64,000 nt of DNA from Rebecca billardiae RCC1528. Its lineage: Eukaryota; Protista; Haptophyta. The notes beneath the pieces are model-generated. The model ran no database searches. It was not told where the DNA came from and saw only the letters and a list, made by a program, of their open reading frames with translations. This document shows, in pieces, positions 15,869 to 63,274 of the stretch. The stretch covers positions 806,001-870,000 of the forward strand of contig OZ251225.1 of assembly GCA_965240325.2 (NCBI GenBank). The letters are read 5' to 3'. Position 1 is the stretch's first letter. Every line of letters starts with the position of its first letter. A program made the position numbers and the translations under genes.

Positions 15869-16758
15869 TGGCCAGCCTGGCCGATACACACCCTTACCGC
15901 TCTGCGCATGGGGAACCCATGCTCGCAGAGCGGCCGGGGCGAATCTCAGGGGCCTGAGGCGGTCCCGGACGCGCGCCCCGCGGCCACACCTGAGGGTGCG
16001 GGCGGGCTCTTCGATCATGTTGGTGAGCTCTCCGCCATCGGGGCGCGCTTCATTGCGCCGCCTCGCCTCGCGTACGGCGTTCCCGTCGTGCTCGCACTGA
16101 CAAGGCTGAGCAGAGCGTAGAGTGCCATCATGATTGCATTCGGTTCCAACTTGCTCGCCAGCCACTTCCAGCCAGGTGCGCGCGGCTTGGGAGTAGACGA
16201 TTAGTTCCGTGTGCCCGGGCTCGTCGTGACACCGGCATGCCGATCCCTCCCCAGCCGAGATGTCAGAGCGCGTGCGCACAGGCAGTCACAGGCAGTGCGC
16301 ACTGGTAGCCAAGTGGACGCGTGTGAGCGACGACAAGCCACGACGAGAAAACGGCCGCATCCAACCTTCTCACATACCACTAGACCACCGCGCAGAATGC
16401 GTCTGAGCCCGCCCATTCCCGCCCATAACGAGTTACAGCGGCTCGATTGTGAGGCGGGTGCAAAGGCGGCGGGTGAAAGCGAGCCCCGCGCGGGCGGCGA
16501 GAGAGACGCGCGTGCATAGACCTGATGCGGGAGTGCCCGAACAACGTGAAGGTGCGTCCATCTTCCAAGCGCGCGACCGGTCCGACACCGCGCCACGCCA
16601 AACGAGCACCACGCGTGTCGCCCCCCAGCGCCGGCCACGCGTCCCGAGGCGCTGCCATGTTTTGTCACGGGCCCGATCTCTGAGGTTAGCCCCGGCCGCT
16701 CTGCGAGCGTGGTTCCACCACGCGCAGAGCGGCCGGGTGTGTATCGGCCAGGTGGCCA
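15869..16758. mobile_element. ~890-bp element bounded by ~80-bp inverted repeats, each containing a GNA-loop hairpin (putative non-autonomous element)
   Basis: 15869-15949 (TGGCCAGCCTGGCCGATACACACCC..CCGCTCTGCG..CGCAGAGCGGCCGGGGCGAATCTCAG) is the near reverse complement of 16680-16758. No credible ORF inside; no target-site duplication identified. Confidence 0.55.
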
Positions 16759-35892: not shown

Positions 35893-35954
35893 ACTAATTC
35901 TATGATTTATATAAAGACACAGGCACGAGGGCGCAGCTCTCCTGATTCGTCTGT
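35893..35954. repeat. Dispersed ~60-bp repeat, copy A (downstream of PEPCK)
   Basis: ACTAATTCTATGATTTA(TATA)AAGACACAGGCACGAGGGCGCAGCTCTCCTGATTCGTCTGT, matching 39034-39091 apart from a 4-bp indel. Confidence 0.9.
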
Positions 35955-39033: not shown

Positions 39034-39091
39034 ACTAATTCTATGATTTAAAGACACAGGCACGAGGGCGCAGCTCTCCTGATTCGTCTGT
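39034..39091. repeat. Dispersed ~60-bp repeat, copy B (upstream of PEPCK)
   Basis: Direct-orientation match to 35893-35954. Confidence 0.9.
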
Positions 39092-46639: not shown

Positions 46640-46668
46640 TTCCCCTTTATAACGGGCTCCGGGTGATC
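46640..46668. repeat. 29-bp exact direct repeat, copy A
   Basis: TTCCCCTTTATAACGGGCTCCGGGTGATC, identical at 63246-63274. Confidence 0.9.
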
Positions 46669-47031: not shown

Positions 47032-50000
47032 TCACGATGCAGCGGCGGCGGCGGGGTTGATCAGCCCCATGAAGCGGTCACGCACGGCCTTGGCGAGCAG
47101 CCGCACCGGCCGCTTGACCGGCTCGACGACGAACTCGAGCAGCCAGTCGCGGATGTCCTCGGGCAGGCAGCTGAGCAGCCTCTCGACGATCAGCACGATG
47201 AGCGGCACGCCGGGCTCCACCACGACCAGCTTGAGCGCCCACTCCTCGAGCCACGCCACGAGGATGGACGGCTCGGTGCCGGCAAAGGCCGCCCACACCG
47301 CCGGGTCGCGGATGCGGTTGCGCGTCGTCGAGTCGTTCGGGTCGGCGTTCGGGTCGTAGCCGGCGATCGAGTAGAGGACGATCTGAGTCGCCATCGCCGC
47401 GGCGAGCAGCAGGTGCCCCGTCCAGACGAGCCGGCGCTTCCACCGCTTGGGCCGGTTGGCCCACCACGTGCCGTCGCGCAGCTCGTCGTCCGTCAGCTTG
47501 GCGCGCGCGTAGATGAGCGACGCGCTCGCGCCGCCTACGCCCTCCGCCGCGCGCTCGTACGCCTCGAGGAGCGTGCGCGTCGCGGCGTCGGGCGCGGCGA
47601 CCACGTCGACGGGCGAGATCTGCCGCTCGTCCGCGAACGGGCTCCCCTTGTACACCACGTCCGCCATCTTGATCATCACCGCCTGCGCCGCCGAGCGCCG
47701 GCCGCGCAGAGGCGCGCCGTAGATGGCGTCCATCTCCTCGGCGCCGATGGGCGGCAGACCATACACGAGCTCGGCCTGCACGAAGCGGAGGTCGGGCACC
47801 TCGGCGGCCGCGGCGGCCGCCGCCTCGGGGTCGGCCTCGGCGTCTAGGCCCGAGCTCGCCGCCGCCGGCGCCGCAGCCGCCGCGTCGAGCGCCGCGGTGC
47901 CGGCGACGAAGAAGCCGACCAGCTCGCCCCCCTCTGTCATGATGGAGAGCAGGGCCTGCTGGGGCACCGCCACCGAGCGCTCGGGCTCGTCCGCGCCCGA
48001 CTCGCCCACCGTGTCCGCGCCAAAGCCGCGGCGGATGCCGCGGCCGAGCGGCGTTCTGGGCGAGAGCGGCGAGAGCGGCCCCCGGCTCCGGTCGCCGCCC
48101 GCCGTCGAGCGCGAGCCCGCGCGCGTGCCCACGCGCCGCCGTCCGATCGCCTGCACCGTCATTGGCCGCACGTACCGCAGGCGCATGCGCTGCGCCGAGT
48201 CGCCGATCACGATGCGACCGTCGGTGCGCGAGCGAATCGACGCGCGCTGCGAGGACGCGCTGCTGCGCTGCAGCGTGATGGCCGGCACGCTCGCCGCGAC
48301 CAGCTTGCGCACCGCTGGCACCCGCGGGATCGGCGAGCGCGAGCCGAGGACGGAGACGCCGACGCTGCGGCCCACGGCACCGGCCTCGGGCGCAGCCGGC
48401 GGCGGCGGCGGCGGCGGCGCGCGGCTGGACTGCTGTGGGGGCGTGCGAGGCGGCGTGGGCCCGCGGCTGGACTGCTGTGGCGGTGTGCTCGCCGCCGACG
48501 CGCCCTCGCCCGAGACGGAGCGCCGCATCCACTGCGGCGTGCCGGGGATCGACGCTGGCAACGACGGCGCGCGCGAGGCCGGTCGCGACGGCGACTGCGA
48601 CGGCGGCTGAGACGCGCGCTGCGACGGCGGCTGCGTGCCTGGCGGCGACGTGTGCTGGGACCCCGGCTGCTGCGTGGCTGGCTGTGACCCCGGCTGCTGC
48701 AACGACGCCAGGCTCGACGAGGGCTGCGCGCCAGCCTCCGACGGCGCTCTCGACGGCGGCTGCGACGCGTGCGCCGAGGAGGTGCCTGTCTGTGCGCCGG
48801 CCTGCTGCTGACGCGCCGCGCTCGACTCTGCGCGCGGAGCTGGCGCCGCCGCGGGCGGCACGCCCAGTTGGGCGCCGACGGCCGCCACCGCCCCGTCGAA
48901 CGCGCGCGACACGCCCTCAGACCACGCCCCCCACGTGCTGGACGGCGCTCGCGCGGGCTCGGGCGGCGGCGGCGCGGGCGGCGGCGGCGCGGGTGGCGGC
49001 GGCGGCGGCGGCTGCGTCGACGGTGGCGGCGGGCGCGACGCCGCCGCGGCCGCGCCGCTCGGCAGCGCGCCGGACGCCTGCGAGTCGTCCGCCGCGATGT
49101 ACGCGGCGGCGCGCGAGTTTGAGCGCGGCGTGAGCGCCGCTCTCTTCTGCTCCTCGCCCGTCATGTCGTCCGGCCGGCTCTCGAGCAGCCCGCGCCGCCT
49201 GTTCGCCCAGGTGAAGCTGAGCTCCAGCAGCTTCTCATACGGGTACGACAGGAGGAGTGCGATCAGGGCGACCAGCAGGGTCGCGACCGCCGCCGCGTTG
49301 TCCTGGCCGTAGAAGGCGGCGATGCCGAGGACCTCCATCAGCGCGACGTTGAGCAGCACGAGCACGCGCTGCTTCGCCGTCCACCGCTCCCCCGGCAGCC
49401 GCGCCACCCACGACGTGAGCGTCGAGCGCAGGATCATCGCCGCGATGAACTTGGAGCACGGCCCCCGCCCTTCTCTCCGCTTCCAGCGCGGCACCTCCGG
49501 GTTGGTCTCGACGCGCCGGTCGATCACAAAGGCGATGGCCTGGAAGAGGCAGAAGACGCCGAGGATGATGGAGACGATCACCACGCCCCACCAGTTCTCG
49601 AACACCACGTTCGTCAGGTCCACGCGGTTGACCGTCACCGTGCCGCTCTCGTCGTCGTCGCCGTCGTCGCCGCCGCCGCCGCCGCCGCCGTCGTCGCCGC
49701 TCGCCAGCTCGGCGATCGCGCCGGCGATCGCCGCAAAGTCGGTGAGGTGATCGCACTCGCACACGAGGAGCGCGTCTGTCGACTCGTCCGCGTTGGTCAC
49801 GCAGCCGGCTGTCGAGTACAGCGCCTGCGACTCGTTCCAGAAGTGGCACAGCGTGAGGTCGTCCGCGGCGGGCACCGCCCCGTCGAGCGCGCCGCCCGCG
49901 GGCAGCAGCGGCACCTCAATGCGGACGGCCTCCGGCAGTTGGCGCACGTCCAGCGGGGTGAGCGCGCCCGCGAGGAAGAGCTGCACGACAAAGAGGGTCG

Positions 50001-53000
50001 AGCGGATCGCCGTGAGCGCGTCGAGCGCGTCCGCGTCCGACGGCTGCCCGCTCACCGCCGGGTGCGTGTTGAACTCGAGCGAGATCATCTGCAGATCGAC
50101 GCCGGGCGCGACGGCGGCCGCGCCCTGCGCGTCAAAGAGGGCGTCGGGGAGAACCACGCCGCCCACGCCGCCGGGCCCGGCGAGGGGCTGGCCGGCGATC
50201 TGCGCGGGGTACTCGCGCGTGGAGGAGACGTTCACCTTCGCACCCAGCGCCTCGCGCGCCGCCTCGCCCGGCAGCACGCCCACGAGCAGCGTCGAGGCGA
50301 GCCCCTCCGCTGCGAGCTGCACGCGCACGTCCAGCACGCCCTCAGACTCGGCGTCCGCGCGCTCGGCCGAGCCCGAGCCGCCCGCCGCGGCGTCGGCGAT
50401 GTCGGCGGTGCCGGAGACGAGGACGGCGTCGAGCGCGCCGAGCGTGTTCGCCGCCGTCGACTCGTCCAGTCCCTCGCCGCGCGCGCCCTCCAGGATGGCG
50501 GACACCTGCTCGAGCCCCTGCACGCGCGCGCTCGCGTCGATGGCCTCGGGCAGCGCGAGCGCGGACGCGAGCGCGCCCGACAGCTGCACGCGCGCGGCCT
50601 CCGAGTCATCGGTGACGGCGGCGGCCGAGCTGATCAGGCCGAGCAGGTCGTTGACGAGCCCCTGCGCCGCGCTCGAGTTGCCCGCCGCGACCGTGGGCAG
50701 CGTCGCGCTCGCCACCGCCGTCAGCCTCTGCAAGGCGCTCTGGCTGTCGCTCGTAGCCACGTCCCGCTCCGCGTCGTCCAGGAGCGCGCGGATCAGGCCG
50801 AGGTCGGCCGCGTCGTCGGCGGGGAGCTCGGAGACGGAGACGGGGGCTCGGACGCTCGCCGTGCCGTCGAACTGGTCGAGCACCGTCACGTCCGCCTCGA
50901 GCTCGCCCGGCGGCAGGAAGCTCGTCGTCGTCTCGTCGAGCGAGAGCGAGCTGACCGCCTGCACGGTCGAGCCCGACGCCGAGCCGGCCGCGGCGCGCAC
51001 GTACCCAAACGCGTACCGGAGGGGCAGGTCGTCGCGGTCGTCCTGGAAGCCCGCCGCCGTGAGGACGAACTGCGTGAGCGCGGCGGTGCCGTTGGGCGGC
51101 GAGACGTCGAGCTCGCCGCCGTACGGCGGCCTGTTCATCGCCACCTCCACCGCCGCCGCCGCGGGCAGCGCGCCGCCCGTCACCTGCAGCGAGAGAAGGT
51201 AGGTGGCGCCCGCGGTGAGCACGCCCGAGCGGAACACAAACGATCGGCGCGTGTCCGCGGTGGTGGTGACGGTGCGCGCGTCGCTGATGTCGAGGCTCGA
51301 GGGCACCAGCTCGCCGCCCACCTTCTCCGACACCGCCCACTGGAACGCGAAGCTCACGTTCAGCTCGCGCTCGAGCGCCGCCGACGCCTCGTCCAGGCTG
51401 GCGGTGAGCGCGATCGACTCAGCGGGCGTCTCCCAGCGCGGGTTGAACTTGGGGCGCGGCAGCGGCGAGAGGGAGACGACGGGGACGAGGTCGTTGACCA
51501 CGTCGACGACGACGGAGGTGCTGGCGCTCAGCCCCGCCGTTGAGACGCCGAGGCTGAACGTGAACTCGCCCGTCGAGCCGAGCACGCCCACGGGCACGCG
51601 CAGCGTCGGCCCGTCGGTCGGGATTGCGCTCAGATCGACGGCCGCGCCGCTCGCCGTGCGCGCGCCGCTCCATGCGTACGCGAGGCCGGCTGCCGAGCCG
51701 ACGTTGGGGTCGGTGGAGGCGGAGCCGTCGAGCTCGAAGGCGCCGCCCGACGCGTTGAGCGACACCGTGCGGTCGCCGCCGCTCACCTCCGCCACGAGCG
51801 GCTGCTCCTCCACCACGAGCCGCACGCTCGCGTTGGCGGCCGCGCCCGGCTCATCCGCCATCGCCGCGCTCACGCGCAGCTCGTATGCGTACCCTGCGCG
51901 GAGCGAGTGCGCGTCGAGCTCGAGGGAGGCCTTGGCGGCGGCGGCGGCGGAGAACGGCGCGCCCACCGCCGCGCCGGACGAGCCGTCCGCCGGCGCCGCG
52001 CCGAGCAGCGCCCACGAGAAGACGACCGTCGAGGGGCGGCTGGGCGGCCAGCACGCGGCGAGCTTGGCGCTCGCGCGCAGGGTGGTGCGCACGTCTGGTC
52101 GGACGACGCGCGAGAAGGGGCCGTCGACGGCGGTGGTGGGGGCCAGCCCGCCCGAGCGCTGCACGCTGAAGCTCGCGAGCGCGGACTCGAGCCCGAGGAA
52201 CGAGCTCGTCTGCAGCAGGAACGCGTACTCCGCGCCGGCGGGGAGCGGGTCGATGCTGACGGTCTGCGTGTCGCTCGGCAGTGCGCCGAGCAGCGCGTTC
52301 AGCTCGGCGGAGGCGTCGCTCTGCGGCGCGGCGCGCCAGCGGTAGCTGAGCGCGCGCACGCCGCCGCCGCTCGAGCCGAGGCTGCGCAGCGTGAGCGCCT
52401 CGTCCGCGCACGCGCTCACCACCGACGGCCCGCTGATCGCCGCGCTCGGCAGCGGGCAGCCGCCGATGCACAGCGGGTCCTCGGGCTCTGAGTCGTCCTG
52501 TGGGATGGAGACCGCGCCCGACGCGCAGAACACGTCCGGGCACGGGGCCGAGCTGGCGGCGGGCTTGAGCGCGTCGGCGCGGAGCGCGACGGTCGAGCCC
52601 GCGGTGATCGCCGTGCGCAGGTTCAGCTCGGCCACCAGCGTGCTGTCGTCCTGCCAGTAGCACTGCGGCGCGCTCGCAAACGTGCCGCGCAGCGTCGCGA
52701 CGGTCGCGTCGTCGAGCACGCGCGCGCACGCCGCGAGCCCCGACATGCCCGCGCGGTCGGTGGGCTGCTCGTCGAACTGGATGACGAGCGCGGTCGCCTC
52801 GGCGTTGAAGCGCGCCGAGAGCAGCGTCGGCGCGTGCAGGCCCTCGAGGTACTCGAAGCTCGTCGCGTTCGCCGGCACGCCGGACGAGGCGGGCGCGTAC
52901 TGCCGCCCGTTCAGGCTGACGCGCACCGCCGCGCTCGAGCCAGCGCTGCCGGTTGGCGAGGCGACGCGGATCTGTGTGGCGGTGACGGAGGCGGGGACGA

Positions 53001-56000
53001 CGGTGCGCGTGCCGAAGCGCACGCGCAGCAGCCCCTCCGCCGCGCCGGGCGCGAGGCCCGTCGCGTTGAGCAGCGCCCCGAACCCGCTCCCCCTCAGCAC
53101 CACCTCGTTGCCGCCGCGCGGGTCGCCCTCCGCTGGCGCGACGCTCTGCAGCCGCGGCTCCTCGTAGTACGCGAACTGCACGGCCGAGCTCGTCGTGGAG
53201 AAGGCCGTGGCGTTGTTCAGCGAGAGCTCGAGCGACGCGACGCCCGGCGCGCCACCCGGCGCCGCGGGCATCTGGCACAGCATGCGCTCGACCGCGCCGC
53301 CGCCGATGGCTGCGAGGAGCACCGCCGGAGCCGCGCACCCGGCGCCGCCGAGCACGCAGCACGCCTCGTCTGAAGCGAGCGCGGCAAAGCCGCTGCCGCG
53401 CAGCGTGACGCGCGTGCCGCCGCTCACCGGCCCGCCCAGCGGCAGCGCCACGTCCAGCGCCACGCCCGCCACGTCGTACAGCGCCAGCTCGATGTCGTCG
53501 AAGAAGTTGGGCACGAGATCGGCCGGCACATGCGCATTCGTGCCGGCCGCGGTGTGGCCGTTGAGCGACAGCCGCACGGTGTAGGTGCGGCCGCTCACGC
53601 CGAGCCTCGCGGGCGCGGGGTCGCACACGGCGCGCGTCGCGCCGTCCACCGCCGCGGGCACCGTCGCCGTCTCCACGCTCGACAGCCCGACCGAGGTGTA
53701 CACGCACTTGGGCGCGTCGGCGCCGAGCGACACGAAGCCCGACCCCGTGAGGGTGACCGCGCGCAACGCGGCCGCGGGCGCGACGAGCGGCGCGGATGCG
53801 CTCACGCTCGCGCTGTACACGACAAAGGTGGCGTTGGACGGCGCAAAGCTCAGCCCGTTGAGCGTCACCTGCAGCGACACGGCCGAGCCCGCGGCGAGAC
53901 TCGGCGCGGCGCACCGCACCTCAGTCGGCGAGATGAGCGTCGCCTGGACGGGGCTCGAGCGCTCGCCAAAGCGGCAGCGCAGCCCTGCGCCGCCGTAGTC
54001 GGCGAAGCCGCTCCCTCGCACGGTGACGAGTCGGCTGCCCGCCGCGTACCCGCTCGGCAGGCCGGGGGGCACGCTCTCCGCCACCGCGCCCGCCGACGCC
54101 TCGTACACGACGAACGCGCGGCTGGCGAGAAGCTCGGTCGGCGCCGAGCCGAGCGCGCGCAGCTCGACGACGAGCGCCGGGCTGACGGGCAGCTCGGCCG
54201 TGGGCGCGCACACCACCTCGGACTCGGAGACCGAGCTCACGTTCACCAGCACAAACGCCTCGGAGCGCGACTCGCCGAGCGTGCCGTTCGGATAAAAGGC
54301 GCAGCGCAGCGCAGCCTCGCGCCCGAGTGCGGGCGCAAAGCTCTGCGCCGCGCCGACGATGGTGACGGCCGTCTGCTCGCCGGACGGCGCGGCGAGCGGC
54401 GTGGTCGCGATGATGTCGGCGACTGAGAGCAGGGGCGAGGGCGGCGAGGGCGGCGGCGCGGGCGAGACGCGCGGCGGCGGCGGCGGCGGTGGCGGCGGCA
54501 CGGGCGGCGACGAGGGCGGCGGCCGCGCGGGTGGCGGCGGGCTCGGCGAGGGTGGTGGCGGCGGGCTCGGCGGCGGCGGCGAGGTCGGCGGGCTGGGCGG
54601 TGGGCTCGGGTATTCGCACGTGCCGTCGTCGAACGTGGCACTCGAGTCATAGTTGAGCGCCTCCACTGCCGTGCAGCCGGGGTACAGCTCGGAGATGCCG
54701 CCCTCCTGCACGCTCAGCCCGAGCTCGCTCGACAGCTCCTCCTCGCCCAGCCCGCTCAGAGTGTCCGTCACGTTCACCTGCGGCGCGGCGTCGAGCTGGA
54801 AGATCTCGACCACGGCGCTGGCGGAGGCGGGCTGGATGGCGGCCACGCGCATCTGCGCGGCGGGCACGCCGAGCACGCCCTCGAGGCCGCCGAGCAGCTC
54901 GGCCTGCGCGCCGTCGTTCAGGTCGTCCACGTCCTCAGCGAGCAGCAGCTGCACGAGCGTCTTGCGCCCGGGCGGCGGAGGGCTCGGCGGGGGCGAGGGC
55001 GGCGGCGAGGGCGGAGGCGCCGGGCTCGGCGGCGCCGGTGGCGGGAAGGGCAGCTCGCGGGGCGGCGGCGGCGGCGCGTGCGGGCTCGGCGGCGAGGGCG
55101 GCGGCGAGAGCGGCGGCGGCGGAGGTGAGGGTGACGGCGGCGGCGGCGACGGCGGCGGCGGGCTCGGCGGCGGGGTGGGCGGCGAGCCAGGCGGCGGGCT
55201 GGGCGGCGGGCTGGGCGAGCTGACGAGCACGTCGAATGCGTCGCGCACGATCGTGTCGTTCCCGCCGCCGCCGTCGATGAAGTCGACACGCCCGTCGGCG
55301 GTGTTGATGTAGTCGTCGCCGGCGCCGCCAAACACGCGGTCGTACCCCGTGCCGCCGTGCAGCACGTCGTCGCCATCGCCACCTGCGCACGCGCGCGTGC
55401 GCATGGGTCAGGTGCAAGCGCGCACGCGCGGCACACACGGCGTGCACGGGCCACGCCGCGCACGCACGCAGCCGCCCATTGCGCCCGCGCGCACCGTAGA
55501 CCAGGTTGACCACAGACCCCGAGCGATCGCTCGCGTTGGCAGCGGCCGACACGTCGCCGCCGTAGATCACGTCCCGCCCCGCCCCGCCGTGCAGCACGTT
55601 CGTCACGGAGCCGCCGACGCTGCTGCCGTCCGCAGCGCCGCCGTCGCCGCCGTGAAGCACGTCGTCGCCGGCGCCGCCGCGCAGCACGTTCGTCGTGTTG
55701 CCGCCCGCGCCGCCGCCCGCGCCCGCGCCGCCGTCGCCGCCGCGCAGCACGTCGGCGCCGGCGCCGCCGTCGAGCACGTTCAGGGCGCCGCCGCCCACGC
55801 TGCCGGACGAGTCGGCCGCGCCGCCATCGCCGCCGAGCAGGGTGTCCGCGCCCGCGCTGCCGTTCACCACGTTGAGCACGCTGCCGCCCACGCCGCCCAG
55901 CCCGCCACTGCCCGCGTGCCCGCCGAGCACCGTGTCGTTGCCCGCGCCCGCGTCCACGCGGTTCGTCGCGCTCCCGCCCACGTTGCCCGCAAACCGCGCC

Positions 56001-59000
56001 TCGCCGGCTGAGCCGCCGCTGATCACGTCGTCCCCGCCCAGCCCGTAGACCGCGCTCTCGGCGGAGTCGCCCGTCGCGGGCGCGCGGCTGTTGAGTGCTG
56101 CGCCGCCCTCGCGGATGCCAGCGCTGCCGTTGAGCACGTCCGCGCCCGCCGTGCCCACCACCAACGCCACGCGAGGCGGCGGTGGCGGCGGCGGCGGAAA
56201 TGGCGGCGGGTCGGGCGGCGGGCTGGGCGGCGGCGCTGGCGGCGGCGCGGGTGGCGGGCTCGGCGGCGGTGTGGGCGGCGGGCTTGGCGGCGGTGTGGGC
56301 GACGGCGGCGGGCTGGGCGGCGGGCTGGGCGAGCTGACGAGCACGTCGAATGCGTCGCGCACGATCGTGTCGTTCCCGCCGCCGCCGTCGATGAAGTCGA
56401 CACGCCCGTCGGCGGTGTTGATGTAGTCGTCGCCGGCGCCGCCAAACACGCGGTCGTACCCCGTGCCGCCGTGCAGCACGTCGTCGCCATCGCCACCTGC
56501 GCACGCGCGCGTGCGCATGGGTCAGGTGCAAGCGCGCACGCGCGGCACACACGGCGTGCACGGGCCACGCCGCGCACGCACGCAGCCGCCCATTGCGCCC
56601 GCGCGCACCGTAGACCAGGTTGACCACAGACCCCGAGCGATCGCTCGCGTTGGCAGCGGCCGACACGTCGCCGCCGTAGATCACGTCCCGCCCCGCCCCG
56701 CCGTGCAGCACGTTCGTCACGGAGCCGCCGACGCTGCTGCCGTCCGCAGCGCCGCCGTCGCCGCCGTGAAGCACGTCGTCGCCGGCGCCGCCGCGCAGCA
56801 CGTTCGTCGTGTTGCCGCCCGCGCCGCCGCCCGCGCCCGCGCCGCCGTCGCCGCCGCGCAGCACGTCGGCGCCGGCGCCGCCGTCGAGCACGTTCAGGGC
56901 GCCGCCGCCCACGCTGCCGGACGAGTCGGCCGCGCCGCCATCGCCGCCGAGCAGGGTGTCCGCGCCCGCGCTGCCGTTCGCCACGTTGAGCACGCTGCCG
57001 CCCACGCCGCCCAGCCCGCCACTGCCCGCGTGCCCGCCGAGCACCGTGTCGTTGCCCGCGCCCGCGTCCACGCGGTTCGTCGCGCTCCCGCCCACGTTGC
57101 CCGCAAGCCGCGCCTCGCCGGCTGAGCCGCCGCTGATCACGTCGTCCCCGCCCAGCCCGTAGACCGCGCTCTCGGCGGAGTCGCCCGTCGCGGGCGCGCG
57201 GCTGTTGAGTGCTGCGCCGCCCTCGCGGATGCCAGCGCTGCCGTTGAGCACGTCCGCGCCCGCCGTGCCCACCACCAACGCCACGCGAGGCGGCGGCGGC
57301 GGCGGCGGCGGAAATGGCGGCGGGTCGGGCGGCGGGCTGGGCGGCGGCGCTGGCGGCGGCGCGGGTGGCGGGATCGGCGGCGATGTGGGCGGCGGGCTCG
57401 GCGGCGGCAGAGGCGGCGGGCTGGGAGGCGATGACGGCGGCGGTGAAGGAGGCGGTGCGGGCGGAGGCGGGCTGGGCGGCGGGCTCGGTGGTGGACTCGG
57501 TGGAGGCCGTGGCGGTGGGCTTGGAGGCGGCGACGGCGGCGGTGTGGGCGGTGGGCTCGGCGGCGGCGGCGGTGGTGGGCTCGGAGGCGGTGACGGCGGC
57601 GGTGAAGGGGGCGGTGACGGCGGAGGCTGGCTGGGCGGCGGGCTTGGCGGCGGCGACGGTGGCGGGCTCGGTGGAGGCAGTGGCGGTGGGCTTGGTGGCG
57701 GGCTCGGCGGCGGGGTTGGTGGTGGCGGCGGCGGTGGTGGGCTCGGCGGCGGTGACGGCGGCGGTGACGGCGGCGGTGACGGCGGAGGCGGGCTGGGCGG
57801 CGGGCTTGGCGGCGGCGACGGTGGCGGGCTCGGTGGAGGCTGTGGCGGTGGGCTTGGTGGCGGGCTCGGCGGCGGGGTTGGTGGTGGCGGCGGCGGTGGT
57901 GGGCTCGGCGGCGGTGACGGCGGCGGGCTGGGCGGCGGGCTTGGCGGCGGCGACGGTGGCGGGCTCGGTGGAGGCTGTGGCGGTGGGCTTGGTGGCGGGC
58001 TCGGCGGCGGGGTTGGTGGTGGCGGCGGCGGTGGTGGGCTCGGCGGCGGTGACGGCGGCGGTGACGGCGGCGGCGATGGCGGAGGCAGGCTGGGCGGCGG
58101 GCTCGGCGGCGGCGACGGTGGCGGGCTCGGTGGAGGCAGTGGCGGCGGGCTTGGTGGCGGGCTCGGCGGCGGGGTTGGTGGTGGTGGCGGCGGCGGCGCC
58201 GCCGGTGGCGGCGAGGGTGGCGGGCTCGGCGGCGGCGGCGACGGCGGCGGGCTCGGCGGAGGCAGTGGCGGCGGTGGGCTCGGCGGGGGCAGTGGTGGTG
58301 TGCTCGGCGGCGGGCTCGGCGGAGGCAGCGGCGGTGTGCTCGGAGGCGGTGACGGTGGCGGCGACGGCGGCGGGCCCGGCGGCGGAGGCAACGGCGGCGA
58401 AGATGGCGGCGGTGGCGACGGCGGAAACTCGAGGCTCAGCACATACACAGCGCCCTTGTTTGGAGCGCCCGCACCGCCCGTGCTCGTGGCGCCCACGATG
58501 ATCTCGGGGCTGCCGTCGCCCGAGAGGTCGCCGAGCAGTGCGCCCGAGAAGCCGAACGCGTCCTGGTCCGCGAGCGGGCCGAGCAGCCCGCCCTGCACCG
58601 CCGACACCTTCTTGGCGTCCTTCACCGTCCCGCCCGCGCTCAAGTAGATCAGGTAGATGGCGCCGCGGTCCACGCCGCCGTCGTCGTCGTACGGCGCGCC
58701 CACGAGCGCGTCGGGCACGCCGTCGCCGTCCATGTCGCCCAGCCCCGCCACCGCGCGGCCGAACTGGTCGCCGTCGCTCAGCAGCGGGCCGAGGCCGCCC
58801 TCCGTGTACGAGATCTTCGTCTGGCCGAGCACGCTGCCGGCGGCCGCCATCCGCAGCAGCCAGACGGCGCCGCGGTCCACGCCGCCGTCCGCGTCGTTCG
58901 GCGCGCCCACGAGCACGTCGGTGACGTTGTCGCCGTCCACGTCGCCGAGCGAGGCGGCGGCCAGCCCGAAGTTGTCGCTCGGGAGCAGCACGCCGTTGAA

Positions 59001-62000
59001 GCCGCCCAACCCCGAGCCGATCTCCACGTCCGCCTTGACCGTGCCGTCGGCGCGCATCAGCAGCGTGTACACTCGGTTGTCCCCAGGGCTGCCGACAAGC
59101 ACGTCGGTGATGTTGTCGGCGTCGAGCGTGCCCAGCGCGGCGAGCGACCAGCCGAAGTCGGCGCCGGTGCCGAACGTCGCGCTCAGCCCGCCCTGCCCGC
59201 TGCCCACCATCGCGCTGCCCTTCACCGAGCCGTCGGCGTTGAGGAAGGCGGTGACGACCACGCCGCCGAGCGTGACAGGATTGCCCACCATCACGTCTGT
59301 CACGCCGTCGCCGTCCATGTCGCCCAGGCTGGCGAGCGCGCTGCCGTACAGCGCGAAGGGCGACGAGTCGAGCACGAATTTGGTCGCGCTGCGCACCGTG
59401 CCGTTCGGCTCGAGCAGGCACACGTACATGTCCTGCCCGTCCGAGAAGTCCTCGCTGAACTTGTAGTCGAGGTTCGAGACGAGCGCGTCTGGCACGCCGT
59501 CGCCGTCAAAGTCGCCCAGCGCGGCGACCGCGCGGCCGAGCTCGCCGATCGGGTCGAAGGGGAAGTTGCCCTCGGTCTCGGAGATGCGCACCTCGCGCGC
59601 GACCTTCTGCACCGTCGCCGCCGAGGGCGGCGGGCTGGGCGGCGGGCTGGGCGGCGGCGGGCTGGGTGGTGGGCTGGGTGGCGGCGAGGGCGGCGGCGGG
59701 CTCGGCGGCGGCGCGGGTGGGTCGGGCGGGCTGGGCGGTGGGCGGGGCGGCGGTGGGCTGGGCGGCGGCTCGAGTGGCACGAGCGCGCTCGTGCTCACGC
59801 CGGTGGATGGCGAGTCCCCCCTCGGCGCCGTGTCGCCCTGCCCGAGCGTGCCGAACTGGTTGCGGCCCCAGCACCGCACGTGCGAGCCGTTGACGAGCGC
59901 GCACGACGCGTCGGGCCCGACCGCGACGCTGCTCGCAGAGCCGCCCGCGCCGAGGTCGACGGCGGGCAGCCGGTCTCCCATGCTCGCGTTCGTGGCGCCG
60001 CGCAGCTGCGTGTCGTCCGTGCCCAGCACGCCGTACGAGCCGTTGCCCCAGCACTTGACGAGCCCGCCCGCGATTGCGGCGCACGCGTGCACGCTCGCCG
60101 ACGCGTCGACGAGCGACGGCGCCGGCCCAAACGGCGTGGGCTCGCTCCCCAGGGCCACGATGGTGGTCGGCGGGAACGCCGTCAGGTCCGTCTCGCCCGG
60201 ATGGTCGCCGCGGCTCTCGAGGTCGCCCATGCCCAGCTGCGCGTCGCTGTTGTCGCCCCAGCAGAAGACGAAGGCGTTGCTGATGATGGCACACGCGTGG
60301 TGCTCGCCGCAGCTGCGCGCACACGTACACGCGCGCGCGCGCGCGCGAGCGTGCGCGCGCGAGTTTGGAGTGAGGTGTCGCGTGCGCACAGCGGCGGCGA
60401 GGGTCGCGGGCGGCGCGGGCGTGGGCGGGGCACGGCTGGCGAGACAAGGCGGGCAGCCGCGCACCTCACTTGGTTCACCGCCTCGAACTCGGCCGGCTGG
60501 AAGATATTCCGCAGCGTGGCCATCGAGCCAGTCTCGTTGCCGCGCGTGAGCGTGTCGCCCACGCCCAGCTGCGGGGGGCGCGCGCCGTGGACGCGGCGCG
60601 CAGCACATGCGTGAGGCGGAGCAGGCCGGCGCGGCGACGGCGGGCTGCGGCGCAGCGCACGGCGCACGCGCGCGCGCACCTCGCCGCGCCCGTTCTCGCC
60701 CCAGCAGTACACCCCTCCGTTCGACCAGGCGCAGCTGAAGCGCGCGCCCGCAGACACGCCCCGCAGGGAAATCCGCCCGCCCCCGGGGCTCACGAACGGC
60801 AGCGAGTCGCCCATCGTGGCCGGCAGGCCGCCGCGGCCCGCGATGTCGTCGTACCCGAGCTGCCCAAAGCCGTTCTGCGCGCCGCCGCGCGCGCGGGAAG
60901 CGAACGCGTGCGAGGGAGGGAGGGGGGCGTTCGGCGTCGGGTGGTGGCGCGGGCTGCTCGGAGCCGCGCACTGGCTAGGAGGCGCGCGCGCTGCGCTGTG
61001 CGAGGGAGGAGGTGCGTGCGCGGCGCACCACGCCCCAGCACTTGACGTCGTTGGTGTCCGTGCGCACACACGCGTGCGTGCTGTCGCCGCTCGAGCTCCC
61101 GCCGACCGAGACGTCCGCCACAACGATCTCGGCGCCGAGGTTCAGAACGGGCAGCGCGTCGCCCATCTGGCCTGGCCCTGAGCCCACGTCTGCGACCGCA
61201 CCCGTGCCGAGCCGACCGCCCGCGCCGCGCCCAAAGCACGAGACTGCGCCTGTCGTGTACAGCACGCACGTGACGGACGCGCCCGCGCTCACCTTGGACA
61301 GCACGAGCCCGCTCGGGAGCGACAGGTACGGCAGCGCGCCGCCCATCTCGCCCGGGTCGTCGCCGCGCGTGCCAGTGTCGCCAAGGCCCAGCTGGCCGTG
61401 GGCGTTGACGCCCCAGCTGAAGGGCGCACACGGCGGCGGCGGGTGCGCAGGGCGGGGGCCAGTCGGCGCGCGCTCGGGCGCGCGCACGCGCGCGCGCTCG
61501 CGCGCGAGCGCTCGCGCGCGAGCGCTCGCGCGCGAGCGCTCGCGCAGCTGCCGCGGGGGCGCCGTCGCACCACTTGAGCTCCTGGCTGTCTGTGACGGCG
61601 CACACGTGCCCAGCGCCCATCGACAGCTGCGAGAGGCCGAACGGAGGCGGCGGCGGGTTGGGCGGCGGGCTGGGCGGCGGGCTGGGCGGCGGGCTGGGCG
61701 GCGGGCTGGGCGGCGGGCTGGGCGGCGGGCTGGGCGACGGCGGTGTGCGCAGCGACAGCACGCGCACGCGCCCCTTCAGGGACCAGCTCGGCGAGCCCAC
61801 CATCACCCCGACGCTGCCGTCCGCCGCGAGGTCGCCGACCAGCGCGACCGAGGTGCCAAACCCCTCAAAGTCAGCGAGGGGCCCGACCAGCCCGCCCTGC
61901 GCGCTCGAGATCTTCTGCGAGACCTTCACGCCGCCGAGGGCGTTGAGGTAGAGCAGGTACACCGCGCCGCGTTGCGAGCCGCCGTCGCCGTCGTCCGGCG

Positions 62001-63132
62001 CGCCGACGATCGCGTCGGGCACGCCGTCGCCGTCGATGTCGCCCAGCGCCGCCACGGACGCGCCAAAATTGTCGCCGTCCGCCAGGCTCTGTCCGAACCC
62101 GCCCTGCGTGTCCGAGATCTTGGCCTGCGCCGCCACCGTCCCGGCGGTGGTGAGGAAGAGGACGTACACGCACCCGCGGTTGGAGCCGCCGTCGTCGTCG
62201 TTCGGAGCGCCCACGAGCACGTCGGTCACGTTGTCGCCGTCCACGTCGCCGAGCGAGGCGACGGCATCGCCGAATCTGTCCGAGCCACCGAGCGGGCCGA
62301 CAAAGCCGCCCTGCCCGTCGGTGATCCGCACATCCGCCTTCACGCTGCCGTCGGCGTGGAGGAAGAGGATGAACACGTCGTTGTCGGACGAGGCGCCCAC
62401 GACGACGTCGGTCACGTTGTCGCCGTCCAGCAGCCCGAGCGAGCTGAGCGCCTTGCCAAAATTGGGCTCACCGCCGAGCGTGTAGCTGAACCCGCCCACG
62501 CCTTCGCCGATCTGGACGCGCCCGCGCGCCGAGCCGTCCGCGTTCATGAAGACGGTGTACACGAACCCGCAGCAGTCACCGATGCCGTCGCCGATCGCCA
62601 GATCGCCCACACCGTCGCCGTCGATGTCGCCGATCGCCGCCACAGACTCGCCAGGCTCGTGGGACGGCGGCGCGCCGTCGAGCACGAACTTGGTCGCGCC
62701 CCGCACGGTGCCGTTGGGCGCGAGCGTGCACAGGTAGAAGTCGTGCCCGTCTGTCACCCCGCCGTCATCAAAGTTGGTGATGATCGCGTCAGGCACGCCA
62801 TCCAGGTTGATGTCGCCAATCGGTGCGAGCGCTCGCCCAAAGAAGCCGATTGGGTCGAAGGGGAAGTTGCCCTCTGTCTCGGAGATCACCTGCTCAGCCA
62901 CGACCTGGTGAAGGGCCGAGACGCCAGGCGGCGGCGGGCTCGGCGGCGCGCCCGGCGGCGGCGGGCTTGGCGGCGGGCTCGGCGGCGGGCTCGGCGGCGG
63001 TGGGCTCGGCGGGGGCGATGGTGGCGGGCTGGGCGGCGGGAATGGCGCGGCGCGAACACCGACGCAAGCCATTGCGGCGAGTGCGAACAGCCGTAGGCCG
63101 GCACGCCTGGCGCGAGCCGTGCTCACGCCCAT
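47032..63132 (-). CDS. Giant polycystin-1/adhesion-receptor-like protein (~5,101 aa): signal peptide, FG-GAP propeller, RCC1 repeats, second FG-GAP propeller, Pro stalk, 2x RTX Ca-binding modules, SEA-like domain, IPT/TIG, REJ, GAIN/GPS, ~5 TM helices
   Basis: Exons 63132-61571, 61416-61029, 60874-60680, 60568-60465, 60312-56609, 56496-55495 and 55382-47032 total 15,306 nt (divisible by 3). Every GT-AG join restores a motif (LKCWG, CWGVNG, GELG, VSCG, YGGDG). REJ motif NRPPYGG..DLPLRYAF; GPS CHFWN..GC..CECDHL|TDFA; PKD1-like W..KQRVLVL TM segment. Confidence 0.85.
55196..57370 (-). repeat. Near-identical 1,114-bp tandem duplication of an RTX (GGxGxD) exon-intron module
   Basis: Introns 55494-55383 and 56608-56497 appear identical and are 1,114 bp apart. 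The RTX exons differ at only a few bases (e.g. CGTTCACCAC vs CGTTCGCCAC; AAACCGCG vs AAGCCGCG). Confidence 0.92.
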
Positions 63133-63245: not shown

Positions 63246-63274
63246 TTCCCCTTTATAACGGGCTCCGGGTGATC
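63246..63274. repeat. 29-bp exact direct repeat, copy B
   Basis: Identical to 46640-46668; lies ~115 bp upstream of the 63132 ATG. Confidence 0.9.

Follow-up and report, generated by a model that had tools for sequence, protein, structure and literature searches.

A gene for a giant modular surface protein, hereafter the receptor, lies in a 64,000-nt stretch of DNA from the haptophyte Rebecca billardiae RCC1528 (GCA_965240325.2, contig OZ251225.1, positions 806,001 to 870,000 of the forward strand; this whole stretch is the window, and its numbering is used throughout). We found that the membrane base of this protein is almost certainly the front half of polycystin-1 (PC1), without the channel. 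Our favored explanation, which we hold with modest confidence, is a self-cleaving, multivalent surface receptor for adhesion or contact, belonging to an expanded pavlovophyte family built on this half of PC1. The receptor (5,101 amino acids, aa) is encoded on the minus strand at 47032-63132, from the ATG at 63132 to the TGA at 47032, in seven exons with 15,306 nt of coding sequence. From the N-terminus, it comprises a probable signal peptide, an FG-GAP propeller, an RCC1 propeller, a second FG-GAP propeller, a Ser-Pro3 rod, two RTX-like solenoids, five IPT repeats, a REJ module, a GAIN domain and five transmembrane helices (TMs). One spliced frame of ~5,100 aa had been proposed in an earlier annotation made from the letters alone (the sequence-only reading) and is borne out here. 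Searches of Pfam, PDB, Atlas and other databases were made exon by exon, and the joined protein was used for length, stops and hydropathy. Both the domain content and the homology follow from sequence or predicted fold.

The assignment of the base relies on an AlphaFold model of aa 3919-5101, in which a confident GAIN domain precedes three helices; a long disordered loop separates these from two more, and a short tail ends the chain. The GAIN fold matches ADGRG6 (Z 20.7, root-mean-square deviation (rmsd) 2.9 over 227 residues) and BAI3 (Z 19.2), and the helices match residues 3071-3620 of human PC1, that is, TM1-5 (Z 17.4, rmsd 3.6 over 195 residues). Independently, a family profile finds PC1 with an E-value of 1.7e-14 over TM2-3. 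Pfam gave no match to a PLAT domain between TM1 and TM2, where the model has ~40 aa versus ~140 between the matched PC1 stretches. The TOP domain and the six-helix TRP-like channel half are also absent: the stop codon falls ~45 aa past TM5, and homologues end alike. Having the front half alone, the protein cannot form part of a channel in the way that PKD1 does. It would hence work in the manner of the PC1 front half, short of full membership in the PKD1 family. The sequence-only reading had recognized a PKD1/REJ chassis and suggested AlphaFold modeling of segments as a check; the modeling upholds it with the GAIN and TM1-5 matches above, and REJ, GAIN and the membrane part extend the likeness, but only to the front half. 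A novel five-helix base was rejected, as the fold match equates it with PC1 TM1-5, and so was an adhesion G protein-coupled receptor (GPCR) with a 7TM bundle, as the five helices match PC1. The HL/T cleavage triplet is intact (aa 4197-4199), and HLT[DS] predominates at the cleavage site among homologues. By analogy with PC1 and adhesion GPCRs, self-cleavage at HL/T probably occurs.

The features of the gene and its product are as follows.

63132-61571, 61416-61029, 60874-60680, 60568-60465, 60312-56609, 56496-55495 and 55382-47032, minus strand: exons 1 to 7
63049-63132, minus strand: probable signal peptide (basic start, hydrophobic core, VRA/AP), read by eye from the sequence
61753-62907, minus strand: FG-GAP beta-propeller 1, prokaryote-type, with four DxDxDG calcium loops (Pfam, sequence)
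59787-61630, minus strand: RCC1 propeller, seven blades over exons 1-5 (Pfam, sequence)
58434-59606, minus strand: FG-GAP beta-propeller 2 (Pfam, tree)
57294-58430, minus strand: main Ser-Pro3 rod, ~380-390 aa, ~75% proline, ~120 nm long if a polyproline II (PPII) helix
56330-57293, minus strand: RTX-like solenoid copy 1, 30-residue coil, holding intron 5 (Pfam, model)
55216-56179, minus strand: RTX-like solenoid copy 2, holding intron 6, which is identical to intron 5 (Pfam, model)
55190-57414, minus strand: recent tandem duplication of 1,114 nt, both borders in Ser-Pro3-coding DNA
54685-54960, minus strand: conserved ~90-aa segment, earlier termed SEA-like (conservation)
54604-54681, minus strand: two-cysteine GCT..N(Y/F)D..AT.DDG.C module (sequence, homologue)
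52846-54420, minus strand: IPT/TIG repeats (by eye and Pfam)
50701-52836, minus strand: pre-REJ domain and REJ module (Pfam, homologues)
49714-50583, minus strand: GAIN domain, with the HL/T triplet at 49749-49741 (Pfam, fold)
49204-49593, minus strand: TM1-TM3, homologues of PC1 TM1-3 (profile, fold)
47446-49203, minus strand: ~590-aa cytoplasmic loop, largely disordered apart from a small conserved alpha/beta part (Pfam, model)
47167-47445, minus strand: TM4-TM5, matching PC1 TM4-5, with the C-terminus ~45 aa further on (fold)

Pfam places FG-GAP in exons 1 and 5, RCC1 in exons 2, 3 and 5, RTX (PF00353) in exons 5, 6 and 7, and TIG, REJ (9.3e-38) and GPS in exon 7. Thus, the two FG-GAP propellers and the RCC1, RTX, REJ and GPS domains read from the letters were all scored by Pfam, the TMs number five, and twelve motifs of the GxGxDxLxG type were counted for the RTX nonapeptides. 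The GCT..DDGTC module is present (~54681-54604) and recurs in a homologue. The previous estimate of about four IPT/TIG domains was right as to the presence of these repeats, but the count is five IPT-like repeats by eye and three by Pfam. The segment labeled SEA-like is conserved but gave no match in Pfam, PDB or named Atlas entries. At the position of the G/SVVV cleavage motif, it reads PASASAVV here and AGSAVL in one homologue. The Ser-Pro3 linkers, which the sequence-only reading had omitted, together amount to ~830 residues, and proline rod makes up ~16% of the protein.

Regarding the gene model, all six introns are GT-AG and measure 111-154 nt, and the spliced frame contains no internal stop. 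GC content at third codon positions (GC3) is 0.92 overall and 0.90-0.97 in every domain, resembling that of the neighboring H+-pyrophosphatase gene; therefore, the model is not an artefact of high GC alone. Introns 1-4 all fall inside the single RCC1 propeller, so that splicing is needed to complete its seven C(W/F)G blades, and introns 5 and 6 occupy the same position within each RTX module. Exon 5 runs uninterrupted from RCC1 through FG-GAP and the rod to RTX; the stretch between RTX and the last TM is likewise covered by exon 7 without a break. Because each intron interrupts an RCC1 or RTX repeat, one gene is likely, and splicing restores the register of these repeat domains. A two-gene reading would need to split a domain. 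On this sequence evidence, a single intact gene at 47032-63132 is very probable.

The receptor is not alone. Its top named homologues, Diacronema lutheri KAG8459354.1 and Pavlovales sp. CCMP2436 KAJ1635852.1, have homologous bases; together with intron style and GC content, they point to a pavlovophyte as the source. Homologues from other sequencing runs retain the base, TM2-5 and a portion of the cytoplasmic loop at 25-50% identity. The window itself contains a paralogue (15.7 kb to 1, minus strand, running past the window edge), with a signal peptide, one FG-GAP propeller, a Ser-Pro3 rod of several thousand residues, and pre-REJ and REJ domains, without IPT. Its propeller scores 154-169 bits against those of the receptor versus up to 240 against bacterial ones, a hint that it arose separately or very long ago. 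Upstream of this paralogue, there is an 81-bp inverted repeat (86%; 15869-15949 and 16680-16758). In D. lutheri, whose genome is 73% GC (PMC8379373), the member corresponds to a 5,921-codon open frame (JAGTXO010000041.1, 4051-21813). The annotated protein (3,751 aa) misses ~1,950 codons further upstream, which encode a proline rod and, probably, a signal peptide; as this model starts so far inside the frame, the family looks under-annotated. In the TM3-TM4 loop, several members have EF-hands, the D. lutheri and Pavlovales proteins among them, and IQ motifs also occur in this loop within the family. The subfamily of the receptor has a different conserved alpha/beta subdomain in this loop, modeled at low confidence. 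A similar five-helix pattern that stops after TM5 is seen in many of 150 relatives, for instance in a Rhodomonas salina cluster and Ploeotia vitrea, and a relative from the holozoan Chromosphaera perkinsii has eleven helices, although these counts are indicative only, since some database proteins are intron-truncated gene calls. REJ-GAIN-5TM proteins are seen in a cryptophyte and a euglenid. Given the window paralogue and the D. lutheri and Pavlovales bases, the architecture is one draw from a family and not a unique chimera. The sequence-only reading knew of no described protein with this architecture; neither the architecture nor a 5-TM REJ-GAIN class was described in the literature searched, which covered few subscription journals.

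With 57-59% identity and a sister position in the tree, the two FG-GAP propellers point to an old internal duplication. All of their close relatives that bear a name come from prokaryotes, at 40-46% identity (Actinomycetia, Planctomycetota, Bacteroidota and Nitrosopumilus), in databases that under-sample spliced eukaryotic genes. An integrin alpha was rejected, as the heads score only 41 bits against integrins, versus ~260 BLAST bits against single bacterial propellers, and Pfam found neither thigh nor calf domains. Our FG-GAP tree was a quick one, built from three window copies and the 67 best prokaryote-type hits (70 rows), with no eukaryotic outgroup and no approximately unbiased (AU) test; its backbone is poorly supported and points to no donor. 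In a published FG-GAP tree, Diacronema falls in a eukaryotic clade beside bacteria, and transfer versus ancient loss was left open (PMC13524835). Searches of IMG/VR and of phages for a viral route gave no convincing match. The modules are fully ameliorated and intron-bearing. Altogether, the description of these domains as bacterial-style fits the FG-GAP propellers and, loosely, the RTX module, and per-domain phylogeny, proposed as a check on transfer, returned prokaryotic FG-GAP relatives but no supported nesting in a bacterial clade.

In the RTX-like module, most nonapeptides lie at a spacing of 30 residues, PF00353 scores above its cut-off, and the predicted fold is a wide beta-solenoid. 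The best fold match of its model is SufB/D (Z 12.9); RTX proteins follow at Z 8.4-8.9 with higher identity, and the Atlas TM-score to an RTX cluster is 0.54. Its relatives are generic RTX proteins only (29-45% identity), and its low complexity precludes a useful tree. According to the model, it would be a widened, intron-containing solenoid. An RTX toxin was rejected, as NCBIfam toxin models cover ~45 repeat residues at 17-20 bits, versus cut-offs of 625-2000, and so was a type-I-secreted adhesin, as the RTX repeats are internal, the protein has a probable N-terminal signal peptide and a TM base, and the gene has introns. The two copies differ by 3 mismatches in a 1,069-nt core, with identical introns and the frame kept; the junction is in frame, and three further differences lie in the linker. 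Unequal crossing-over between proline-linker repeats would produce just such a pattern, and the recent duplication illustrates how receptors could plausibly diversify.

On these grounds, the favored adhesion receptor could operate as follows. Cleavage, glycosylation, calcium binding, ligand and signaling we infer from PC1, adhesion GPCRs and MST3 (PMC11015965). The protein would enter the endoplasmic reticulum and cleave itself at HL/T, leaving an ectodomain of ~4,170 aa bound non-covalently to the base. The linkers may form stiff, hydroxyproline-glycosylated PPII rods totaling ~0.24 micrometre, which would keep the heads off the cell; Chlamydomonas MST3 has glycosylated PPII rods hundreds of nm long (PMC11015965). 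The protein would present five globular heads of three kinds on its Ser-Pro3 linkers, with the FG-GAP and RTX-like heads as putative calcium-stabilized binding surfaces for multivalent attachment. Binding or pull would load the REJ-GAIN region and either signal through the ~590-aa cytoplasmic loop, in tethered-peptide style, or shed the ectodomain. Head sets would vary by unequal crossing-over in Ser-Pro3-coding repeats, which duplicates or swaps modules, the RTX duplication being a recent case. A signaling role appears somewhat more probable than a purely structural one, as the EF-hands in the loop of several family members point to signaling. It is possible, in a broader and more speculative picture, that free-standing REJ-GAIN-5TM receptors are an old eukaryote-wide class signaling without the channel half, and that in pavlovophytes Ser-Pro3 recombination swaps and duplicates heads, among them FG-GAP and RTX modules of prokaryote type that became domesticated, into a combinatorial repertoire recognizing bacteria, surfaces or mates, this gene being a five-headed member caught just after a duplication.

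Several observations weigh against the adhesion receptor outlined above. Pfam detected no EF-hand or other recognizable signaling module in this member. An acidic Gly/Asp linker of ~55 aa separates GPS from TM1, and this spacing is shorter in adhesion GPCRs. The RTX-like fold comes from one of five single-sequence models. None of the RNA runs searched contained the gene, and one sequencing run of unknown type yielded a few 150-215-nt contigs at low depth, four of them identical to exon 7; these show that the DNA is present in another sample and are silent on splicing.

The strongest competitor, which we nevertheless consider unlikely, is a passive surface hair, coat or anchoring adhesin, whose base is only an anchor, whose GAIN domain is a release site and whose heads cross-link each other, scales or substrate. 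The proline content of the protein, the absence of the channel domain and the rods of thousands of residues in the window and D. lutheri paralogues agree with such a role, as does MST3, the structural core of a flagellar hair (PMC11015965). However, the conserved PC1-type five-helix base and cytoplasmic subdomain exceed the needs of an anchor, family members have EF-hands, and this member combines a short rod with five different heads.

Alternatively, the five-helix base might act in trans with a separately encoded PKD2/TRPP channel as a two-chain, PC1-PC2-like mechanosensor. In PC1-PC2 structures, channel contacts come mainly from the six-helix half, which is absent here, and we regard this split polycystin as improbable, even though the base is the exact N-terminal TM domain of PC1, an 11-TM relative exists in the holozoan Chromosphaera, and split polycystins exist, namely MST3 plus SIP (PMC11015965). 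It is also the alternative closest to the sequence-only reading. Finally, it is very improbable that the locus is not one expressed gene as modeled (two genes, a silent copy, or an RTX duplication that is an assembly or haplotype artefact): the lack of a match in RNA runs beyond short low-depth contigs of unknown type, the 0.3% difference between RTX copies, a level possible for alleles, and a flanking 29-bp repeat suggesting a recent move or copy are set against 15.3 kb without stop or frameshift, GC3 that stays high throughout, introns that all lie inside domains, an in-frame duplication junction with three further linker differences, and an architecture that the loss of one RTX copy would leave unchanged.

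The flanking repeat consists of two copies.

63246-63274, minus strand: 29-bp direct repeat, upstream copy, 113 nt from the ATG, with a TATAAA-like word
46640-46668, minus strand: 29-bp direct repeat, downstream copy, identical, 363 nt past the stop

This exact repeat brackets the gene with 16,577 bp between copies. It occurs twice in the window, where none is expected by chance, is absent from 116 other loci, and resembles a long target-site duplication or a tandem-copy remnant. No terminal repeats were found inside the 29-bp repeats. The ATP-dependent PEPCK gene in the window is bracketed by a 62-bp direct repeat as well (94% identical; 35893-35954 and 39034-39091). A classical transposon cargo was rejected on both counts, and a processed retrocopy because introns are kept. 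The bracketing suggests a general process of gene relocation or duplication-loss in this genome, not specific to the receptor. Ordinary neighbors occupy 25039-46077: a PCI-domain protein resembling COP9 subunit 2, a GT8-like glycosyltransferase, PEPCK and the H+-pyrophosphatase, whose gene is convergent on that of the receptor.

The head domains are all known individually, and such domain shuffling is common in algae. The receptor shares GGxGxDxLxG nonapeptides with bacterial RTX adhesins, and FG-GAP heads, 40-46% identical to prokaryotic proteins, with bacterial integrin-type propellers (PMC3192720) and the integrin-like family of Pirsonia (PMC13524835). Unlike bacterial RTX and FG-GAP proteins, it is a predicted secretory-pathway membrane protein with introns, without a toxin or enzyme domain or a type I secretion context. 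Adhesion GPCRs (ADGRG6, BAI, latrophilin) have in common with it the GAIN fold (Z 17-21), predicted self-cleavage and adhesion domains at the tip, whereas the receptor has a REJ module and a five-helix PC1-type base instead of a 7TM bundle. In line with this kinship, a 2026 review describes PC1 as an atypical adhesion GPCR (PMC13197933).

Among algal proteins, the mastigoneme core MST3 of Chlamydomonas is likewise a giant that combines proline-rich PPII rods with part of a polycystin membrane domain; however, MST3 retains the PKD2-like channel part and the receptor the complementary PC1 front half, and the MST3 paper does not mention a REJ domain (PMC11015965). Esi0130_0068 of Ectocarpus, a male-gamete-specific candidate recognition receptor, also combines REJ, GPS and multiple TMs, but has 1,427 aa and 6-7 predicted TMs, with no FG-GAP, RCC1 or RTX heads or proline rods described (PMC4700764). 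Hence, a candidate algal REJ-GPS receptor is already on record (PMC4700764), and it is for the layout and the five-helix class that the literature searched gave no description. The closest systems are PKD1, suREJ and PKDREJ, which share with the receptor the REJ-GAIN region with HL/T, TM1-5 (by sequence and predicted fold) and a large modular ectodomain. In contrast to them, the receptor lacks PLAT, TOP and the six-helix channel half, IPT replaces their PKD repeats, and FG-GAP, RCC1 and RTX-like heads on Ser-Pro3 rods stand where they have LRR, WSC and C-type lectin domains. Natural proteins reduced to the front half offer a direct test system for the channel-independent roles of the cleaved GAIN domain and the five N-terminal helices of PC1, and raise the possibility that 11-TM PKD1 arose by fusion.

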